Shown here: positions 37,740 through 47,600 of the stretch, one piece after another
How positions within the stretch are numbered: position 1 is the first letter of the stretch
How the letters are laid out: every line of letters starts with the position of its first letter
Source of the DNA: Guillardia theta CCMP2712
Lineage: Eukaryota; Protista; Cryptophyta
Direction of reading: 5' to 3'
Length of the DNA stretch: 64,000 nt
Assembly: GCF_000315625.1 (NCBI RefSeq)
Contig: NW_005434630.1
Coordinates: 434,001-498,000 of the forward strand
Made by a program: the position numbers and the translations under genes
The notes under the pieces: generated by a model
Told to the model about the DNA's origin: nothing
The model's input: only the letters and a program-made list of their open reading frames with translations
Database searches by the model: none

Positions 37740-38390
37740 CTTGGCTGGATCGTATTGTAACATGGATGGCCTTGCAGCTGTCTCGGGTGGCTGTGACGCT
37801 GGTTACTATTGCTCATTATCGGGAGGACTCGAAGCACGGCCGAACGGAACAACTTCAGGTTTCGGTCCTTGCCCACCTTGTCCGGTTGGAACTGTGCAAC
37901 CAATCAGTTGTCCACCAGGAACATTCTCTGGGGTTGTATTGTACTGAGTGAAACTGCAAATGATTGCCAAAGCTGCTCGGCACGATACTTCTGCCTACAG
38001 AGAACACCAGCATACCACAAACTTGTCCAGAGGGATTCTACTGTCCATCATGAACGATTAATCCACGTAAAAATGACTGTCCGATTGGCAGTGAATGTCC
38101 CGCAGGTCGGTTTTATCCCAAACCATGCAATGCAGGTTACTACCAAGATCAAGTAGGCCAGAGCGCCTGCAAGGTGCTGTCCTATGTCCGTCGGGGTCCT
38201 ACTGCCCTTCTGGAACCAGCGTTGCACATCCTTGCAGCCCCGGGACATACGGGCCTTCACCAGGGCTGGCCGCTTGCCAGGGGTGCCCGAGCGGGAAAGC
38301 ATGCGTACAGCCAGGGACCATCACGCCGACGGTATGTCCGCGGCAGGATACTACTGCGAGTCGAACAGCTCGTCGCCTACTCCGAAATGA
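37740..38390 (+). pseudogene. Fragment of a Cys-rich (GCC2/GCC3, ephrin-receptor-like) repeat protein
   Basis: CDAGYYC, CPPGTFS, CNAGYYQDQVGQSAC, CPSGSYCPSGT..PCSPGTY, AGYYCESNSSSPTP in shifting frames with stops. Confidence 0.75.
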
Positions 38391-38397
38391 CGCAGTC

Positions 38398-41300
38398 TCA
38401 AAGACTCTTTGCGCCCATATCCTCCAGCATTTCCTTAATTGAACATGGAATACTCTGATCGATCGTGGCATCTCGAAACATTAGTTCGTTGCCGAAACAA
38501 TTGAGATCAACTGAGAGAAGAAAGCATCCGTCACTTAAACGCGACCAGCACTTGAAACAATGATCATCACGAGAAAAAGAAAACAAAACATCTGCATGCC
38601 GCCCCCAGCTCACATCACTGACGATTCCTTTATGCCCAAAAAGAGCCTGACACCTCCCCGTCTCTACCTCCCACACCCGTATCTTCTTGTTGTATCCTGT
38701 TGACCAGGCCGCGATCCTCCTCCCGTCCGGACTCCAGCTCACGTCGCTGACTGTATCTCCTTCAGCCTCCAGCACCTGACACCTCCCCGTCTCTTCCCAC
38801 ACCCGTATCTTGCCTCCGTCGCCTGATGACCTTGCAGCGATCCTCCTCCCGTCCGGACTCCAGCTCACGTCGCTGACTGTATCTCCTTCAGCCTCCAGCA
38901 CCTGACACCTCCCCGTCCGAAGCTCTACCTCCCACACCCATATCTTCTTGTTGTATAAATAGGACCTTGCAGCGATCCTCCTCCCGTCCGGGCTCCAGTG
39001 CCAGCTCATGTCGCTGAGTTCATCTCCTTCAGCCTCCAGCACCTGACACCTCCCCGTCTCTACCTCCCACACCCGTATCTTCTGCCCGTCGCCTGATGAC
39101 CTTGCAGCGATCCTCCTCCCGTCCGGACTCCAGCTCACGTTGCTGACTGTATCTCCTTCAGCCTCCAGCACCTGACACCTCCCCGTCTCTACCTCCCACA
39201 CCCATATCTTCTGCCCGTCGCCTGATGACCAGGCCGCGATCCTCCTCCCGTCCGGCGGACTGCAGCAAACACTACTCCAGCCCACGTCGCTGACTGTATC
39301 TCCTTCAGCCTCCAGCACCTGACATCTCCCCGTCTCTTCCCACACCCGTATCTTGCCCCCGTCGCCTGATGACCAGGCCGCGATCCTCCTCCCGTCCGGA
39401 CTCCAGCTCACGTCGCTGACTGTATCTCCTTCAGCCTCCAGCACCTGACACCTCCCCGTCTCTACCTCCCAGCCTGTCCATGCCCGTTTTTTTTTTTGCA
39501 CTGTGAAAGTCACTTCGTACCCACTGTCAGCTATTTCCATTGATTCTTCGACATCAGTTTGAATTTGAGTTACTATCTTCTTACCATCTTGACTCCATTT
39601 CACGTCCGCGATCTCTCCTTCAAATTCCTGCAGCACCCTGCTGCAACTTCCTGTTTCTACTTCCCATATCTGTAACTGAACGGTTTCATAATCTGATGAG
39701 TCTTCATTTTCTGATTCTGATTCACTCCAAAGGTCTGAATCTGAATCAAACATGTCTGAGTCCTCGTCACTGTCTAGCCAAGAGTCAGAATCAGACTCAG
39801 ATTTTGACCAGACAGCAAGCCTCTTCCCGTCTGGACTCCAGCTAGCAACCTTTGCCCCTTCCAAATAGCTGAGAAGCTCCTGATTCCTCCCAGTCACTAC
39901 ATCCCAGATCAATATCCTCCCGTCCGGGTCTGAGTCCGAGTAAGTTGCAAATTTTGTTTTTGATTTCTCCCAAGTCATCTTTTCGAAGAAAACATTTTTG
40001 TAAGAGAATTCAGTGTTACGTGGTTTCTCGTACATCGGTAAAAATTTATGACCCCACGTTTGCTCAAGAAACGAAGCACACCATCATCATTCAGCGAAAT
40101 ACACAGACCTTCCCCTTGTTTTGAGATGCTCATGATATCCGAGGAATGTTGAATCGATCTTAAGCATTCCTCCAGTGCAAGGTCCCAGACTCGCAGCATC
40201 TTCTTGGGATTCGAATGAACCGTAACGAATGTCCTTCCTTCTCGACTCCAAATGATTCGATCAACCTGAAATCCATGTCCCACCACCACTTGACACCTCC
40301 CCGTCTCTACCTCCCACACCCGTATCTTCCTTGAATATGACCAGGCCGCGATCCTCCTCCCGTCCGGACTCCAGCTCACGTCGCTGACTGTATCTCCTTC
40401 AGCCTCCAGCACCTGACACCTCCCCGTCTCTACCTCCCACACCCGTATCTTCGCCCGTCGCCTGATGACCTTGCAGCGATCCTCCTCCCGTCCGGACTCC
40501 AGCTCACGTTGCTGACTGTATCTCCTTCAGCCTCCAGCACCTGACACCTCCCCGTCTCTACCTCCCACACCGTGATTTGATGTTTTTGCTCAGTCCGAGA
40601 CCAGGTCGCGATCTGCTGCTCTCTTGGTGACAATTTTCGATCATAATGAATGGGAATCGATATGTCTGTTCTTTTAGTACACCCTTTTGTCATGAGATCT
40701 ACCGTATGTAGATAGCACTTTACGCAATTTGTTGACCATGTGATGTTTCCGTCAGCTCTGAAATTCATATCTCGGATCGCTCCGTTGTTTCCTTTTACTT
40801 CAAAATAACATTCTTCTGTTTCGATATCCCATACTTTGATTGAGCCCTTGCTCGACACACATGCCAAGCTCTTGCCATCAGCCTTCCATTTCATTTTCTC
40901 AATATCTTCATCAAACCAGGATTCGAGCTGCACATTGCAAATTCCTGATTTTACATCCCACACAAATATGGATCCATTACTTGATTTGGTCGCTAATTGT
41001 TTTCCTTCAAGATCGAATACCCCGTGTTGTACATCCTGACCCATGAGGTTTACAACTGGCATTTCTCCAAAGAAAGCACCATCTAGACGAGCTCCTTCAA
41101 GCATGGATTCCACAAAGTATCCGTGACTTGCGTCTACACCCGACAGATCTGCTCCCTTCAGGTTGGTCCGGTGAAAGATTCCGTTGCTCAAGATTGCGCC
41201 TGCAAGTCTCACTCCATGAAGGTCCAAGCCTGAGAAAGGCACGCTCGCGGCCACCAAGATCGTAGCCGCATTGGCTGAGGCTCTTGCAATTGTCTCAAGC

Positions 41301-43310
41301 TCGCAGTGCCGCGAGGCTCTGATCACGTCAAATAGTCGTTCTATGTACTTGGGTTTGCTTCGCAGCACCATTGCGTGCTCTTTGATTGACTCTATTTCGT
41401 CTCGCAGGTTGTAGACAGTCAGACCCTCTGGCACGATATCGTTTTCCTCGCCCACACCAGCGCGAAGCTCCTCAAAGGTATTCTCGGCAAGGAGAAACTC
41501 CGCACAGTGTCATGCACGAAGCTGACCTCCAGAATATCTCCAAGCTTGTTTGTCTTGAGTCGTGTCAGGCAGCCTCTGAGCAGCCAGTATCCCAACTCCT
41601 TCTCCACGTGGCCTTGCCTCATCGACAGGTTGAAAGGAGGTTCTGATAGGAAGATCCCCCCTGACTTGTGTCGTATGATGATGTTACGTTGCCTGAGCAT
41701 GTGAAGACAGAGCTGTTGAGCAGCTCTTGAGTACCAGCGAATGTAATTTCCATCATCAACCTCGGCCTGCTGCGCCAACTCTGCAAGCTTATGATTTTGC
41801 TTCAATTTGTCCCACTCTCTTCTATACCACTCCTTGGCGTACTCCTTGTACATGCTGTGTCGTGTAATCATGGATTTTGGCTTGTTCATTCGTTTGTAAA
41901 ATAGTCCAGGAAGCACAGTAAGCATCACCTTCAACGAGTAGGGTGTGCTTATAATGCTTTTGAGCTCGGGATTTGATTTTAATGCCTCTTCAAATTGCTC
42001 CATGCTCAATCCCTTGTGAGATCGCTTCATTACTTGGTCTTCGATGTATCGGCTGATTTGATCCTTCGCGTTCCAGCTCAGTGGACAAACCCAAGCGACT
42101 TGAAGGGCTTCCCTTCCCCCAAGCCCATGCGGCCAAAAGAGCGGGTCTGCCTTTCCTTCCATTTTCAGGTAGCCACTCCTACAAGTAACGATAACCTTGA
42201 TGCCTTTGCTGACTGCAAGCTCCTTGAATAGCTTGTCGACAACATTCTCTGTCGTCCCCATCTCATCATAAGCATCCATTACGACGAAAAACGAGTGACG
42301 GCGAAGGAAATCTCTCCACGCCTGATCATTGACTGGCGATTTCTCAGGCCCCACAGCATCCTTCATGTATTCCTTTACACTTTTGCATCTCGGAAGATAT
42401 AGATACACTGGGTAAGCTTTGTCTGCATGCCATGCTTCTCCCATCTCTATTACCCACTTCATGCCGATGGTTGACTTGCCTGATCCGGCCTGTCCGAGAA
42501 GCAGCAGGACACGCTTCCTTTTATCGTGCATGAAACTATGCAGAAGCTTTGAAGATGGCACACCTGGTGCTTGCCTGAACTCAGGATCCGAATCTGTGCA
42601 GTCAGTCTCAATAAAGCAATCGACCGCTTCGTCTACGCTCTCCGAAAAATCACCAAGTGTGTGCTTGATGATTTCACGGAGGTTTTTTGGTATGCTACCG
42701 TATGTCCACTCGACAACCTTACCCGATTCTAGATCCACTTTGTCTGCAAAGCCGTACCTATGACTGTGGCACCAGGCATTGATGATCATATTAGCCTTGT
42801 GAGGCATGAAAGGAGGACTTTGAGATGTGACCATGTGAATAGAGACTTTAGCCTTCTCTTCCAGCTGTTTTATGGTCTGAAAGTCTTCAAAGAAAACTCA
42901 ATTGTATTATCTCCTGCTGTTTCCAGCTCTCCATCAGCAGTTCCGTGCACTCCAGTGTTGATATGAATAGATTGACCAAATGCACTCATTGCTTCAACGA
43001 TCTCCTTGACATCTTCAGCACATACTGGCTGAGTATTCTCCCACAAGTGCTGACCAGAAGCAAGACTGAACACAAAGAATTTGCGATCCGTGGACCATCG
43101 GAGAACATAACGGCCTGGTAATGTCTCAATGAGTCCAAGCGCCCTTGCCTCCTTTTGCAAGTCGAACTTCCGTCCCAGAACCAGGTCATCACTATGAACC
43201 ACAACTCCTCGTTTCTTACCACCTTGACCTAGGTCATGTCGAGATCGCTCTACTTCCTGCTCCAGCTCATCATCTTCCTCCCAGTGCTCACGATCTTGTC
43301 CTGCCCTCAT
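38398..43310 (-). pseudogene. NLR-like STAND protein: putative His/Cys peptidase N-terminus, NACHT, pentapeptide repeats, WD40 repeats; intronless, with four single-base frameshifts
   Basis: Walker A LLLGQAGSGKST, Walker B VVMDAYDEM, VIVTCR, TPYSL, FVHDTVREFLLAE (after frame repair), ASANAATILVAASVPFSGLDLHGVRLAGAILSNGIF...FFGEMP, many WSPDGRRIAA repeats. Five ORFs join by restoring one base at ~42895, ~41500, ~40453 and ~40043. Confidence 0.88.
38645..40575 (-). repeat. Eight near-identical ~126-147-bp WD40-coding repeats (6 + 2)
   Basis: Unit cctgacacctccccgtctctacctcccacacccgtatcttc...tgactgtatctccttcagcctccagca recurs near 38645, 38775, 38900, 39041, 39170, 39317, 40290 and 40410, with partial copies near 39443 and 40540. 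Confidence 0.95.
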
Positions 43311-43649
43311 CGCTCTTCAAACCTGCCCGTTACTAGAGGGGTTACCGGGCGTAGTACCTGGCGTAGTACTACACGAAGGGTCATGTGTTGTATGAGGGTC
43401 TTGGTCGTCCACTCCATAGGGAGAAGCTGGGGAGAAGCTGGGGAGAAGCCTTTGTTCCCTTCACTGCAGGTACGGATGGTCTCCTTCATGCTGACGCTTT
43501 GCGGTTTCTCTGATATCTGGCGGATCACCATGGAGCTACGAGCATCGTTACCGCGTACCAGAGCCGCCCGGCTCAAATAACCAGCGTGTTCTATCGCCGA
43601 CCCCGGCCGATTCTTTTAACGAAAGCCGGGCAGTCCCCGGTCAAAGGCG

Positions 43650-44665: not shown

Positions 44666-47600
44666 GTGACTCGACCCTCAAATTCCAATGTGGCCTTTGT
44701 TCAAGGTGATACGTCAACTAAGGTAACTTTCCCTTTGGGAAGCATTCCAAGCATATTTACGATATGTACAATTGCGCGGCATATTGCAAATGGGACATAC
44801 GGTCGAATCTTTCAAGGCAACACTATCAATTGGCTACATGGGTGGTGGTTTGAAGAACCCGGAAATGGATATTCCATATACGATGACACTAGTACCAAAT
44901 ACATCAAAAATGGGGTTGCACATTATAATGGGTGGATGACAGAGTTTAATGCTTCACTTTTCAGCACTCATGATCATTGGATGATATTTTGTGGACAGAA
45001 TAATGCTATACATCCGAAGAACATCAAAGCTGCAGAGATTAGTTCTGGCTATGTGATTTATGATGTAGGCACTGCAGACGGTGGATCGGGAAACACACAA
45101 CTAGTCATTAACACTGGTGTATATCCCCAGGAAGTAAGTGATTTCAAAATGTCACAGGTTTACATATGGGATCAGACGTTAACATCCGACGAGATGGACA
45201 ATGTGATGTATGCGATGATGCATTACCTGGACACAGGAAAGTCTCTCAAAACGTTGGAGTCGGCCAGCATTGCGCCGATATTTGGATGCTCGGCTTGTCC
45301 TGGTAACTATACTACAGTTGCCATGGGCTCATCGCTTTCACAGTGTGCATGCCTGGCTGGGTATTACGATGATGGATCTGGCACTTCAACCTGCTTGCAA
45401 TGCCCTGCATTGACATCTTCATCCTTTGGTTCCACCTCATTAAGTCAGTGCGTGTGTATACATGGCTATTACGATGATGGAACTGGCATTCGCACATGCC
45501 TCCGCTGCCCCCACTTGACTACCACGAGGTCTGTCGGGGCGACTTCGCTCAGTCAGTGCGTCCCGTACGCCCCCCTCGTCAGCTACCAGTTCGAGGACCC
45601 AAACAACCTCGGGTATGACAGCTCTGGGAATGGGTATAATGCAACCAACTACGGAGCAACGCAAGGCCCAGGGAGGAGGGGAGATGGGGCGGCAAAGTTT
45701 AGCGCGGCTGATACAGAGCAGTACATGACAATGCCCAATAAGATTGATTTCGGGATCATTCAACAAAGCACAGGTTTAACAGTGGCTTTTTGGGGCTATA
45801 TGACTACATTCTCTTCCATGTATGCAAGGTTCATCGATTTTGGTGGAGGACCAAACAATGAGAGCTTAGCAATATACCCCAACGGGGCAGCAACTGCGCC
45901 ATTAACTTTCGCTGTGCTTGATGGCGCTACCCCGATTAACATCTCGTATGACTGGATTCCGCAATACTGGCACCACATTGCATTATCCATAAATCCCAAT
46001 GATGGGTCGACGGATCAAAACAAGATTTCGATATGGATAGACGGTTTGCTGGTCTGTAATGCTTGTCAGCAAGGTCTACTCAGTTCAGTAACTACAGTAT
46101 CATCTCGTCAATGGTACATTGCAAAAGCGAACAGAGCAAATGGAAAGACAGATGGTTCAATCGATGATTTCCGTATATACAACTACCCCTTCACCCAATT
46201 CGACGTCGAGCAGCACTACCTTCCCCTCTACTACCCCACCGGCTGCCTCTCGCAGTCCTACAACCCGAATGCCCTCTTCGCGTTCTACCCGGAGTTGGTG
46301 GCGAGTGCCAATTTCCCAGGGGTGGCGAACCTCAATGCCGCGGTCAGCTCCCCTCTCACCACCTTCGACGACGCATTCCGGCAGTTGGTTGCAAGTGACA
46401 AGTACGGGACGATCGTCTGGGTCTGTTATGATTGCGACTTGGCACACTGGCTCACGTTCTATAAGCGTATACTCCCTGTTGATCCGGACTGGAGCATGTC
46501 CCAGCAGTTTCTGTATCGCTGGATCGCGGACAGGAACACGCCGAATATTCATGTCAAGTTCTATACCAACGAGGCGGACTACCTCGCCGATAACTCGGCT
46601 ACCTTGTTCGATCCGAGCTACTTCTCCATGACCTACGCCACAATCAGCACAAGTCCAAGTGTGGCGCCTACGGTGATCGATAGCAGCTATTCATACCTCA
46701 CGTTTACGCATGTGAATGGTACGAGAACCAACTATTCCGTTACATTTCCCCAAGATACCGTGATTGATTACCTTATCATCGGGGGAGGTGGTGGTGGTGG
46801 GGCAAATGGAGGTGGAGGTGGAGGAGCTGGTGGATTAATCTACAAAACTGGTGTTTTGGTCAAGAAAGGAACGTAAGCTGTAGTTGTTGGTGCTGGGGGA
46901 TCTGGATCACGGATAAATGATGCTTACAGCCAAGCGTCGTCAGGTCAGCAATCGTCTTTCAATGGAGACATTGCAGTGGGTGGAGGGTACGGAGGAACAC
47001 GGGAGGTATCTTCAGGAGCTAATGGTGGCAGTGGTGGAGGAGGATCGAATTTAGGATTTGAAACTGCTGGTAATGGAAATTCGGGTCAGGGAAACAGTGG
47101 GGGAGCTGCTTTCGAGAGTTCTTGTGCTAGTGCGGGAGGCGGAGGCGGAAGTGCAGGCGGAGTTGGAACTCGAGCGAGTAGCAATCAAGGTGGAAATGGT
47201 GGTCCAGGACTGGCTGTGAGTATCACAGGGTCATCGGATGTCTATGCTGGAGGTGGTAGTGGCGGAGCCACTTGTACGCAGGCTGGTCAAAACGGGATGG
47301 CGGGGAAGATGGATCGGGGAGTTCCAACTATGGTGGTGGGGGCGGGGGTGCGGAGGTACCGGGTCGTATGTGATTGGACCCGCAGGTGATGACGGTCAAC
47401 CAGGTGTCGTCATCCTCCGTTACCGCACGAATCACGAGGCCGTGTGTTTTTACTTGTTGAAGGATTGTCAGAGGTGTCAGGATGGGTTTCAGACGAATCA
47501 ATCCCTCGCAACAAATCAGTCTCAATGCGTTTACATGGATTTTGTGCATCCCTGGTGTCCAGTTGGATTTTATTCATCCACGGGGTTTCAGGAAGCTCAA

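Follow-up and report, generated by a model that had tools for sequence, protein, structure and literature searches.

Young, near-identical WD40 units with shuffled top-face loops in a candidate NLR-like gene of the cryptophyte Guillardia theta

A stretch of 64,000 nucleotides from Guillardia theta CCMP2712 (NCBI RefSeq assembly GCF_000315625.1, contig NW_005434630.1, positions 434,001 to 498,000 of the forward strand; here the window) carries on its minus strand a gene of about 1,638 codons with a long WD40 region, and eight of the blades in that region are young copies of one 129-nt unit. We regard it as probable that this gene is functional or only very recently disabled, that it is transcribed, and that its product is a STAND/NLR-like receptor of about 1,638 residues with young WD40 units whose top-face loops have been shuffled. 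The design is that of HET-E in a new lineage, and it is a known principle, not a new one. The host locus of the array corresponds to scaffold JH993008.1 of GCA_000315625.1, the single match in public assemblies for the 471-residue open reading frame (ORF) upstream of the array.

The repeats are evident at the DNA level. A 37-nt core of the unit occurs in eight copies on the minus strand (seven exact and one with one mismatch) versus none in 100 shuffles, and Tandem Repeats Finder (TRF) reports arrays at 38646-39471 and 40283-40571 with a period of 126-128. When units are delimited at the Trp codon of WEVETG, the canonical unit spans 43 codons (129 nt), and two plus six full units are found in two blocks, as defined by TRF, the core matches and the unit alignment:

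40283-40567, minus strand: block A, units A1 and A2 plus 33 nt of unit sequence entering a diverged blade
40567-40440, minus strand: unit A1
40439-40317, minus strand: unit A2
38646-39471, minus strand: block B, units B1 to B6 plus about 28 nt of unit sequence entering the last blade
39471-39343, minus strand: unit B1
39342-39199, minus strand: unit B2
39198-39070, minus strand: unit B3
39069-38935, minus strand: unit B4
38934-38800, minus strand: unit B5
38799-38674, minus strand: unit B6

The blocks are about 810 nt apart, and the spacer codes for diverged blades. Both blocks start and stop in the same unit phase, with about 30 nt (WEVETGRCQ) spilling into an otherwise diverged blade. Pairwise nucleotide identity among the eight units is 82.5-100% with a mean of 91.4%, in line with an earlier note, made from the sequence alone, that had described eight WD40 units as near-identical in their DNA; protein identity is 82% when gaps are counted as mismatches. 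Units A1 and B3 are separated by 1.4 kb and differ only by one base, which is missing in A1. The flanking blades in the protein, namely those after A2 and B6 beyond the first 30 nt, are far more diverged than the units. Length variants occur in frame (+6 nt for LR in B5, +6 for WH in B4, +18 for SVCCSP in B2 and -6 in A2), and with the exception of the A1 gap all length differences between units are multiples of three. The deletion that produces WEETG is shared by two non-adjacent units (B2 and B6), as the note had stated, but it removes one codon (3 nt) and not the 6 nt reported there. A two-unit higher-order repeat (TRF period of 273 nt) was considered and rejected, as identity is 90.1% at two-unit distance and 89.8% at one-unit distance, which is no difference.

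Block B forms seven consecutive blades of the C-terminal propeller. An AlphaFold2 model of 38401-39498 (predicted local distance difference test score, pLDDT, 84; predicted template modelling score, pTM, 0.80) features the regular strand pattern of four-stranded blades, and Foldseek matches the modelled piece to solved WD40 propellers (E 4e-18). The closed ring of the modelled piece contains seven or eight blades, the piece being cut from a longer array.

Variation among the units is concentrated at few positions. In the codon alignment of 43 canonical columns, 12 columns vary in amino acid (19, 20, 22, 23, 24, 43, 45-49 and 52) and six vary only silently (2, 9, 28, 41, 42 and 44), while columns 7-18 and 35-40 hold no change, silent sites included. 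The variants listed in the earlier note (TVSD/TVSN/ELSD, AAW/AAR, SSGDGG/SSGDGQ/SYLYNK/STGYNK/SYSR and IR/IW) are all present. We counted as top face the d-a loop and the b-c turn, together with the opening three residues of strands a and c and the final two residues of strand b, with the topology following the description of HET-E (PMC1805685) and the strands taken from the AlphaFold2 model. Ten of the 12 variable columns fall among the 18 top-face columns and two among the other 25 (Fisher p = 0.0009), and they lie mostly in the d-a loop or the start of strand a and in the b-c turn, so the placement of variable residues in loops equivalent to the fungal ones, as the note had proposed, holds. 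Fungal hypervariable codons are located in the d-a loop and b-c turn of the propeller top face (PMC1805685). Column 49 (G/Q/K/R), the most variable of all, corresponds in the alignment to HET-E codon 25, which belongs to the four hypervariable codons of the fungus; HET-E codons 8 and 9 are the counterparts of columns 22 and 23. By position, the WEETG deletion and the inserts LR and SVCCSP belong to the c-d and a-b loops, on the opposite face.

Summed over unit pairs, the ratio of nonsynonymous to synonymous differences per site (pN/pS) is 1.18 for the top-face columns, 0.07 for the rest and 0.54 for all columns, with pS close to 0.13 in both the top-face and the remaining columns. The scaffold is under purifying selection, whereas loops and silent sites change at similar rates. 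The diversifying selection that the note had invoked does not follow from these values, because the top-face ratio of 1.18 is compatible with such selection but is no demonstration of it, being indistinguishable from neutrality with eight units.

The differences are not spread evenly. In the b-c patch, up to about 8 of 12 nt differ between units whose flanks are identical for at least 30 nt, which argues that uniform drift at a pS of about 0.13 is not the source. Donors for the variant patches were sought within the window, where no copy of 11 nt or longer was found elsewhere for SYLYNK, TGYNK, SYSR or LR/WH/SVCCSP, and in the locus of a close paralogue described below, where no copy of 10 nt or longer of any weight was found. 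Variants at adjacent patches are found in all combinations among units. In the four-gamete test, 18 of the 66 informative two-state site pairs show all four combinations, with a minimum of two events (Rm at least 2), in agreement with the mix-and-match pattern noticed earlier; at least two recombination or conversion events are therefore needed among the units. The AAW/AAR variant is a three-nucleotide haplotype, GCGGCCTGG versus GCTGCAAGG, and for this reason recurrent mutation is a poor explanation there.

The array is embedded in a long coding sequence. In six-frame translation, five long stop-free pieces abut in frames 0/2/1/0/2 from the ATG at 43310 to the stop at 38398, no stops are present over about 4.9 kb once the frame breaks are allowed for, and no introns were seen in 38398-43310 on the minus strand. 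The order in the protein is an N-terminal domain, a NACHT-type P-loop NTPase, pentapeptide repeats, about 18 WD40 blades and a short C-terminal tail:

38398-43310, minus strand: whole gene of about 1,638 codons, from the ATG at 43310 to the stop at 38398-38400, with four single-base gaps allowed for
42560-43310, minus strand: N-terminal domain of about 250 residues, kept in cryptophyte homologues (55-60% identity to P0002-P0004)
42166-42513, minus strand: putative core of the NACHT-type P-loop NTPase, from Pfam matches and motifs
42469-42495, minus strand: Walker A motif GQAGSGKST, from motif reading
42262-42291, minus strand: Walker B motif FFVVMDAYDE, of the hhhhD-x-x-DE form, from motif reading
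42169-42195, minus strand: VIVTCRSGY, a T-S/C-R-type motif after Walker B, from motif reading
41069-41233, minus strand: pentapeptide repeats linking the NTPase module to the WD40 blades (PF00805, E 4e-8; pentapeptide proteins are among the library matches)
40568-41026, minus strand: four diverged WD40 blades ahead of block A, from translation and Pfam scan
39472-40282, minus strand: about four diverged, older WD40 blades between blocks A and B, from translation and Pfam scan (spanned by protein P0143, see below)
38401-38645, minus strand: last diverged blade and C-terminal tail, with a tail motif (IDQS...) common to the paralogue GUITHDRAFT_117479

As read from its domains, the predicted product has a tripartite NLR-like layout with an N-terminal domain, a central NTPase and C-terminal superstructure-forming repeats. 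The note had called the host an algal NLR; the layout agrees with that assignment, but the NACHT score of 22.9 bits is below the Pfam cut-off of 26.7. NPHP3_N scores 27.8 bits (cut-off 24.8), and nSTAND_NTPase5 is also matched. In the PDB, the profile of the NTPase part (41494-42891, minus strand) matched none of the solved NLR structures; sequence and profile searches there match only the P-loops of G-alpha proteins (for the profile, E 5e-5 to 0.02 over the LLLLG-x-GKST P-loop region), which was not taken as homology. A search of the NTPase part against NCBIfam gave no match. For the N-terminal domain, the stored Pfam label of its homologues, including the paralogue, is Tox-HDC (PF15656), and it was not confirmed by hmmscan (at E <= 0.01 for pieces of the window and E <= 0.001 for P0285 and P0002). 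Pfam scans of the N-terminal pieces of the gene and of its homologues found no HET domain.

Two further features of the protein were observed. The pentapeptide linker at 41069-41233 is unusual for an NLR-like protein and is conserved across the G. theta paralogue and Hanusia phi. A Ser/Asp/Glu-rich insert of 41 residues (39685-39807, minus strand) is located inside one of the diverged blades between the blocks.

Homologues were found in Hanusia phi (P0002, P0004 and P0125), in an ENA contig (P0003) and in G. theta itself (P0126/P0285, the latter being GUITHDRAFT_117479). The paralogue P0285 and the Hanusia phi homologues have the same layout as the array gene. GUITHDRAFT_117479 (992 aa) has the N-terminus, NTPase, pentapeptide stretch and C-terminal tail of the array gene, with 63% identity to its linker region via the cluster-mate P0126. 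Neither the paralogue protein nor its locus (L002) has a near-identical array or a match to the unit, only about five diverged blades. Likewise, no library protein matches the array above 46% identity in word and exhaustive library searches, which were not exhaustive for the genome, and UniRef A0A7S4JAJ4 (P0143), a 98% match in the exhaustive search, covers only the diverged middle blades of the array gene itself. The lack of an array in the close paralogue and in the library indicates that the amplification is specific to this gene and later than the split from the paralogue. The note's expectation of paralogues that share the unit is thus not supported by the only close paralogue found, and unit exchange between paralogues of the kind seen in the Podospora HNWD family was not found, as that paralogue has no array. 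The paralogue locus lies on JH993075.1 of GCA_000315625.1 (1-208, 6001-9064 and 12365-15064), where GUITHDRAFT_117479 is flanked by two Peptidase_C14 (metacaspase-like) genes.

The reference interrupts the reading frame of the gene at four places. Contigs from three public runs of three studies, X2 (genome-sized, 2021), X1 (2018) and X3 (2014), were aligned to 38350-43400. The runs holding the locus show no substitution in its unique parts and are probably of the same strain. Three of the interruptions are absent from all three contig sets:

39994-39995: reference error, one T missing (T5 should be T6); T inserted in X1, X2 and X3 contigs, and P0143 reads the restored frame
41492-41493: reference error, one A missing; A inserted in X1, X2 and X3, and homologues continuous (FVHD..RSFFL.E)
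42892-42893: reference error, one A missing (A4 should be A5); A inserted in X1, X2 and X3, and homologues continuous
40452-40453: in the reference, unit A1 lacks one base present in B3, with which it otherwise agrees fully; the gap lies outside a homopolymer and in the most variable codon (column 49)

Because the same extra base is present in the contigs of three runs at each of the first three positions, the reference is wrong there and the gene is not broken there. The contigs are otherwise identical to the reference over 40542-43309 and 39442-40320, the three corrected breaks are exactly the three junctions outside the repeats, and the homologues of Hanusia phi and G. theta are uninterrupted across the first two frame changes. 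Public annotation cuts the locus into models of 471 aa and 383 aa, a split that results from the three bases missing in the reference. The corrected breaks also speak against an interpretation of this stretch as scrambled gene fragments. Protein analyses were carried out on the separate pieces, and a base was added at a break only in a hypothetical sequence used for word counting.

At the A1 gap, no contig of X1 or X3 carries the gap junction, but contig builders remove one-base bubbles. The depth of the bin 40378-40546 in X1 and X3 is wholly explained by the listed contigs. The B3-type contig has 2.3-3.4 times the single-copy depth in X2 and X3, with 2.0 expected if the A1 gap is real and 2.48 if A1 equals B3. 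Word depth thus leans, without being decisive, toward a fourth reference error, a reading to which we give a slight preference.

Within the array the contigs are only 39-92 nt long, and unit order is not recoverable from the public runs. In the contigs of all three runs, the canonical paths through the units and the borders of both blocks agree exactly with the reference. Repeat word depth is 5-45% above the expectation from the reference copy number, and the word depth of the unit contigs fits roughly 8-11 genome-wide copies. One X1 contig joins 38737 to 39059 and skips 321 nt, with a side of 30 nt; the join could be an artefact of contig building or a second route through the repeats.

Several observations bear on transcription. 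P0143 reads ...NSLTKNVFFEK..., in which the frame is restored by the extra T at 39994, and it is therefore independent of the 2012 annotation; its accession series is one that we take to be transcriptome-derived. Sets X1 and X3 are transcriptome-sized (about 40 Mb) and their contigs end at 43309 and 43307, beside the ATG, whereas those of the genome-sized X2 continue, which fits an origin of X1 and X3 from RNA. For the strand of the raw RNA reads of a further run, X19, the first mate lies on the minus strand for 14 of 16 reads, and with the library type unspecified no strand call was made. On this evidence the gene is expressed, though probably at a low level under the conditions of X19. One element of the coding sequence deserves mention here:

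39487-39497, minus strand: run of eleven A (A11) inside the ORF, 15 nt ahead of unit B1; X1 and X3 contigs keep 11

P0143 has one A more at this run and terminates before block B. The extra A could be transcriptional slippage, a switch or an error of transcriptome assembly.

Reading this locus as an NLR-like receptor with shuffled loops has to be weighed against a number of adverse points. Any immune role is putative. The case for NACHT is weak, given the score under the Pfam cut-off, the restriction of PDB matches to G-alpha and a poor NTPase model, as the AlphaFold2 model of this part, built from seven sequences, has a pLDDT of 46 and is too poor for a structure search. Any WD40 protein normally combines a constrained scaffold with free loops, and a pN/pS of 1.18 cannot count as evidence for positive selection; the sample is eight units, and the partition into top face and rest comes from modelled strand topology and not from measured coordinates. 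Synonymous divergence between units is sizeable (pS about 0.13), which implies that homogenisation was not very recent, A1 and B3 excepted. The CGG/TGG (R/W) site of column 52 may be a recurrent CpG change instead of recombination. The A1 frame break could be genuine. In X19, a run of 12.8 Gb of which about 6% was covered, there were 16 raw RNA reads on the gene, and half of these matched only in part. Lastly, no contig covers the variant stretches of B2, B4 and B5, the independent contigs showing canonical paths only; the absence of the variant paths is to be expected, since such contigs drop minor bubble branches, but as a consequence the exact sequence of these stretches and the order and number of units are those of the 2012 reference alone.

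Three other explanations draw on these points. The one to be taken most seriously, although we consider it unlikely, is a young tandem WD40 amplification without any dedicated diversifying mechanism, through replication slippage or unequal crossing-over, in which the loops drift unconstrained, the protein being a scaffold or regulator unrelated to non-self recognition. A loop pN/pS near 1 is what neutrality predicts, the close paralogue has no array, and highly repetitive WD40 proteins, to which many of the top library matches belong, are common in prokaryotes, protists and fungi and have been read as young duplications (PMC5587647). Uniform drift would not, in contrast, yield a b-c patch with up to about two thirds of its nucleotides changed beside identical flanks; the indels are in frame with one exception, and the host is of the NLR type, a class that passages of one recent study describe as enriched in such arrays (PMC13449251). 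Alternatively, the gene might be a decaying pseudogene, with no reference error behind any of the four frame breaks and with repeat variation as the first sign of degeneration. The four frame changes of the reference, the split annotation, the very few X19 reads and an A1 gap that lies outside a homopolymer and is not settled by contigs all point in that direction, but three of the four breaks are absent from the contigs of three independent runs, the reading frame is otherwise free of stops over its full length, every change in the scaffold is silent, indels other than the breaks keep the frame, a presumably transcript-derived protein (P0143) exists and word depth leans toward A1 being equal to B3. 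We consider decay very improbable.

The least probable alternative, by our estimate, is an assembly artefact in which unit order, number or variants stem from Sanger reads mis-joined in the repeat. Several traces are of the kind that such an artefact might leave behind: the reference has three proven single-base errors within 5 kb, no independent contig extends over the variant parts of B2, B4 and B5, one X1 contig follows another path, and repeat word depth exceeds the expectation from the reference copy number. A single Sanger read is comparable in length to the blocks, and blocks A (290 nt) and B (826 nt) are indeed within or near one read length. Moreover, canonical paths and both block borders are exact in three runs, codon-wise replacement patches that stay in frame are unlike base-call errors, and the missing variant paths are to be expected when minor bubble branches are dropped.

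The shuffled NLR-like receptor, which we prefer over these alternatives, has its closest counterparts in fungi. For HET-E, HET-D and HET-R, near-identical WD40 units, hypervariable top-face codons, concerted evolution and repeat shuffling are established (PMC1805685; PMC2873952). Like these HNWD/NWD proteins of Podospora anserina, the G. theta gene combines an N-terminal domain, a putative NACHT-type NTPase and WD40 repeats with near-identical DNA units, in which the variable amino acids cluster in the d-a loop and b-c turn and variants are recombined among units. Unlike them, it has no HET domain, its N-terminal domain being cryptophyte-specific; its unit is 43 residues long as opposed to 42, with a b-c turn that is two residues longer; a pentapeptide stretch separates NTPase and WD40 repeats; and the array is divided into two blocks within a longer set of diverged blades. 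Sharing of units with paralogues was not found in G. theta in a search that was not genome-exhaustive, repeat-induced point mutation is not involved, and the strong positive selection at four codons is a property of the fungus, the G. theta value being the 1.18 given above. We know of no allorecognition in Guillardia theta.

The pattern has been generalised beyond Podospora. Repeats with high internal conservation (HIC) are reported for fungal NLRs in passages of Dyrka et al. 2014 (PMC4986451), and passages of a later study describe their enrichment in ATPase-containing NLR-like proteins of fungi, animals, plants, bacteria and archaea (Genome Biol Evol 2026, PMC13449251). The G. theta gene resembles these in being a predicted ATPase-containing protein with superstructure-forming repeats that are 80-100% alike (here 91.4% for nucleotides and 82% for amino acids), but cryptophytes are not named in those passages of the two papers. 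No paper on NLRs of Guillardia or of cryptophytes was found in full-text literature searches. A related class, the Highly-Repetitive WD40 proteins with diverse hotspot sites, was described from prokaryotes, protists and fungi and read as the product of young duplication (Hu et al. 2017, PMC5587647). Its internal identity of at least 0.7 and its conservation except at predicted top-face hotspots are shared by the G. theta array; the class is defined by repeats alone, whereas this array sits in a mostly diverged WD40 region of an NLR-like protein. The matches of this kind in our library include one protein of Chlamydomonas sp. UWO 241, a green alga, and a NACHT protein of Microthrix. An algal precedent for the shuffling of repeat modules in candidate receptors is provided by the NB-ARC-TPR and LRR-ROCO proteins of Ectocarpus (Zambounis et al. 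2012, as cited in a passage of PMC13449251). According to that passage, these differ in belonging to a brown alga, in their NTPase and repeat types and in having each repeat on a separate exon, with exon shuffling as the presumed mechanism, while the G. theta array is one uninterrupted coding stretch.

Adjacent to the gene, a plus-strand ORF at 44666-46876 encodes 736 residues with Ephrin_rec_like, Laminin_G_3 and glycine-rich domains and is unrelated to the WD40 array.

The two blocks originated through tandem duplication plus conversion between units. As for how such a protein might work, the propeller top face would serve as the ligand-binding surface, and unequal crossing-over or conversion among near-identical units would reshuffle the loop variants and thereby change specificity. 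Binding of a ligand could free the NTPase module, leading to oligomerisation and activation of the N-terminal domain, as in other NLR-type proteins. An immune or cell-death role would be the most likely function of the gene. On a broader scale, it is conceivable, although doubtful at present, that cryptophytes run a lineage-specific NLR-like repertoire that diversifies by shuffling of WD40 units, with this gene as an active member and with the A11 run or changes in unit number acting as on/off or specificity switches.

These observations have consequences for how this family is seen. Single-base gaps in the public G. theta reference split one gene of 1,638 codons into two unrelated-looking models, and the family is under-annotated as a result. 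A HET-E-type array in an NLR-like gene provides a concrete candidate, with named codons, for interactions with viruses, bacteria or grazers, and it adds an independent lineage to the case for near-identical repeats as a general source of NLR specificity. We know of no intracellular immune receptor described from cryptophytes. If cryptophytes do maintain a repertoire that diversifies by WD40 shuffling, it would give a first point of entry into innate immunity or non-self recognition in this group.

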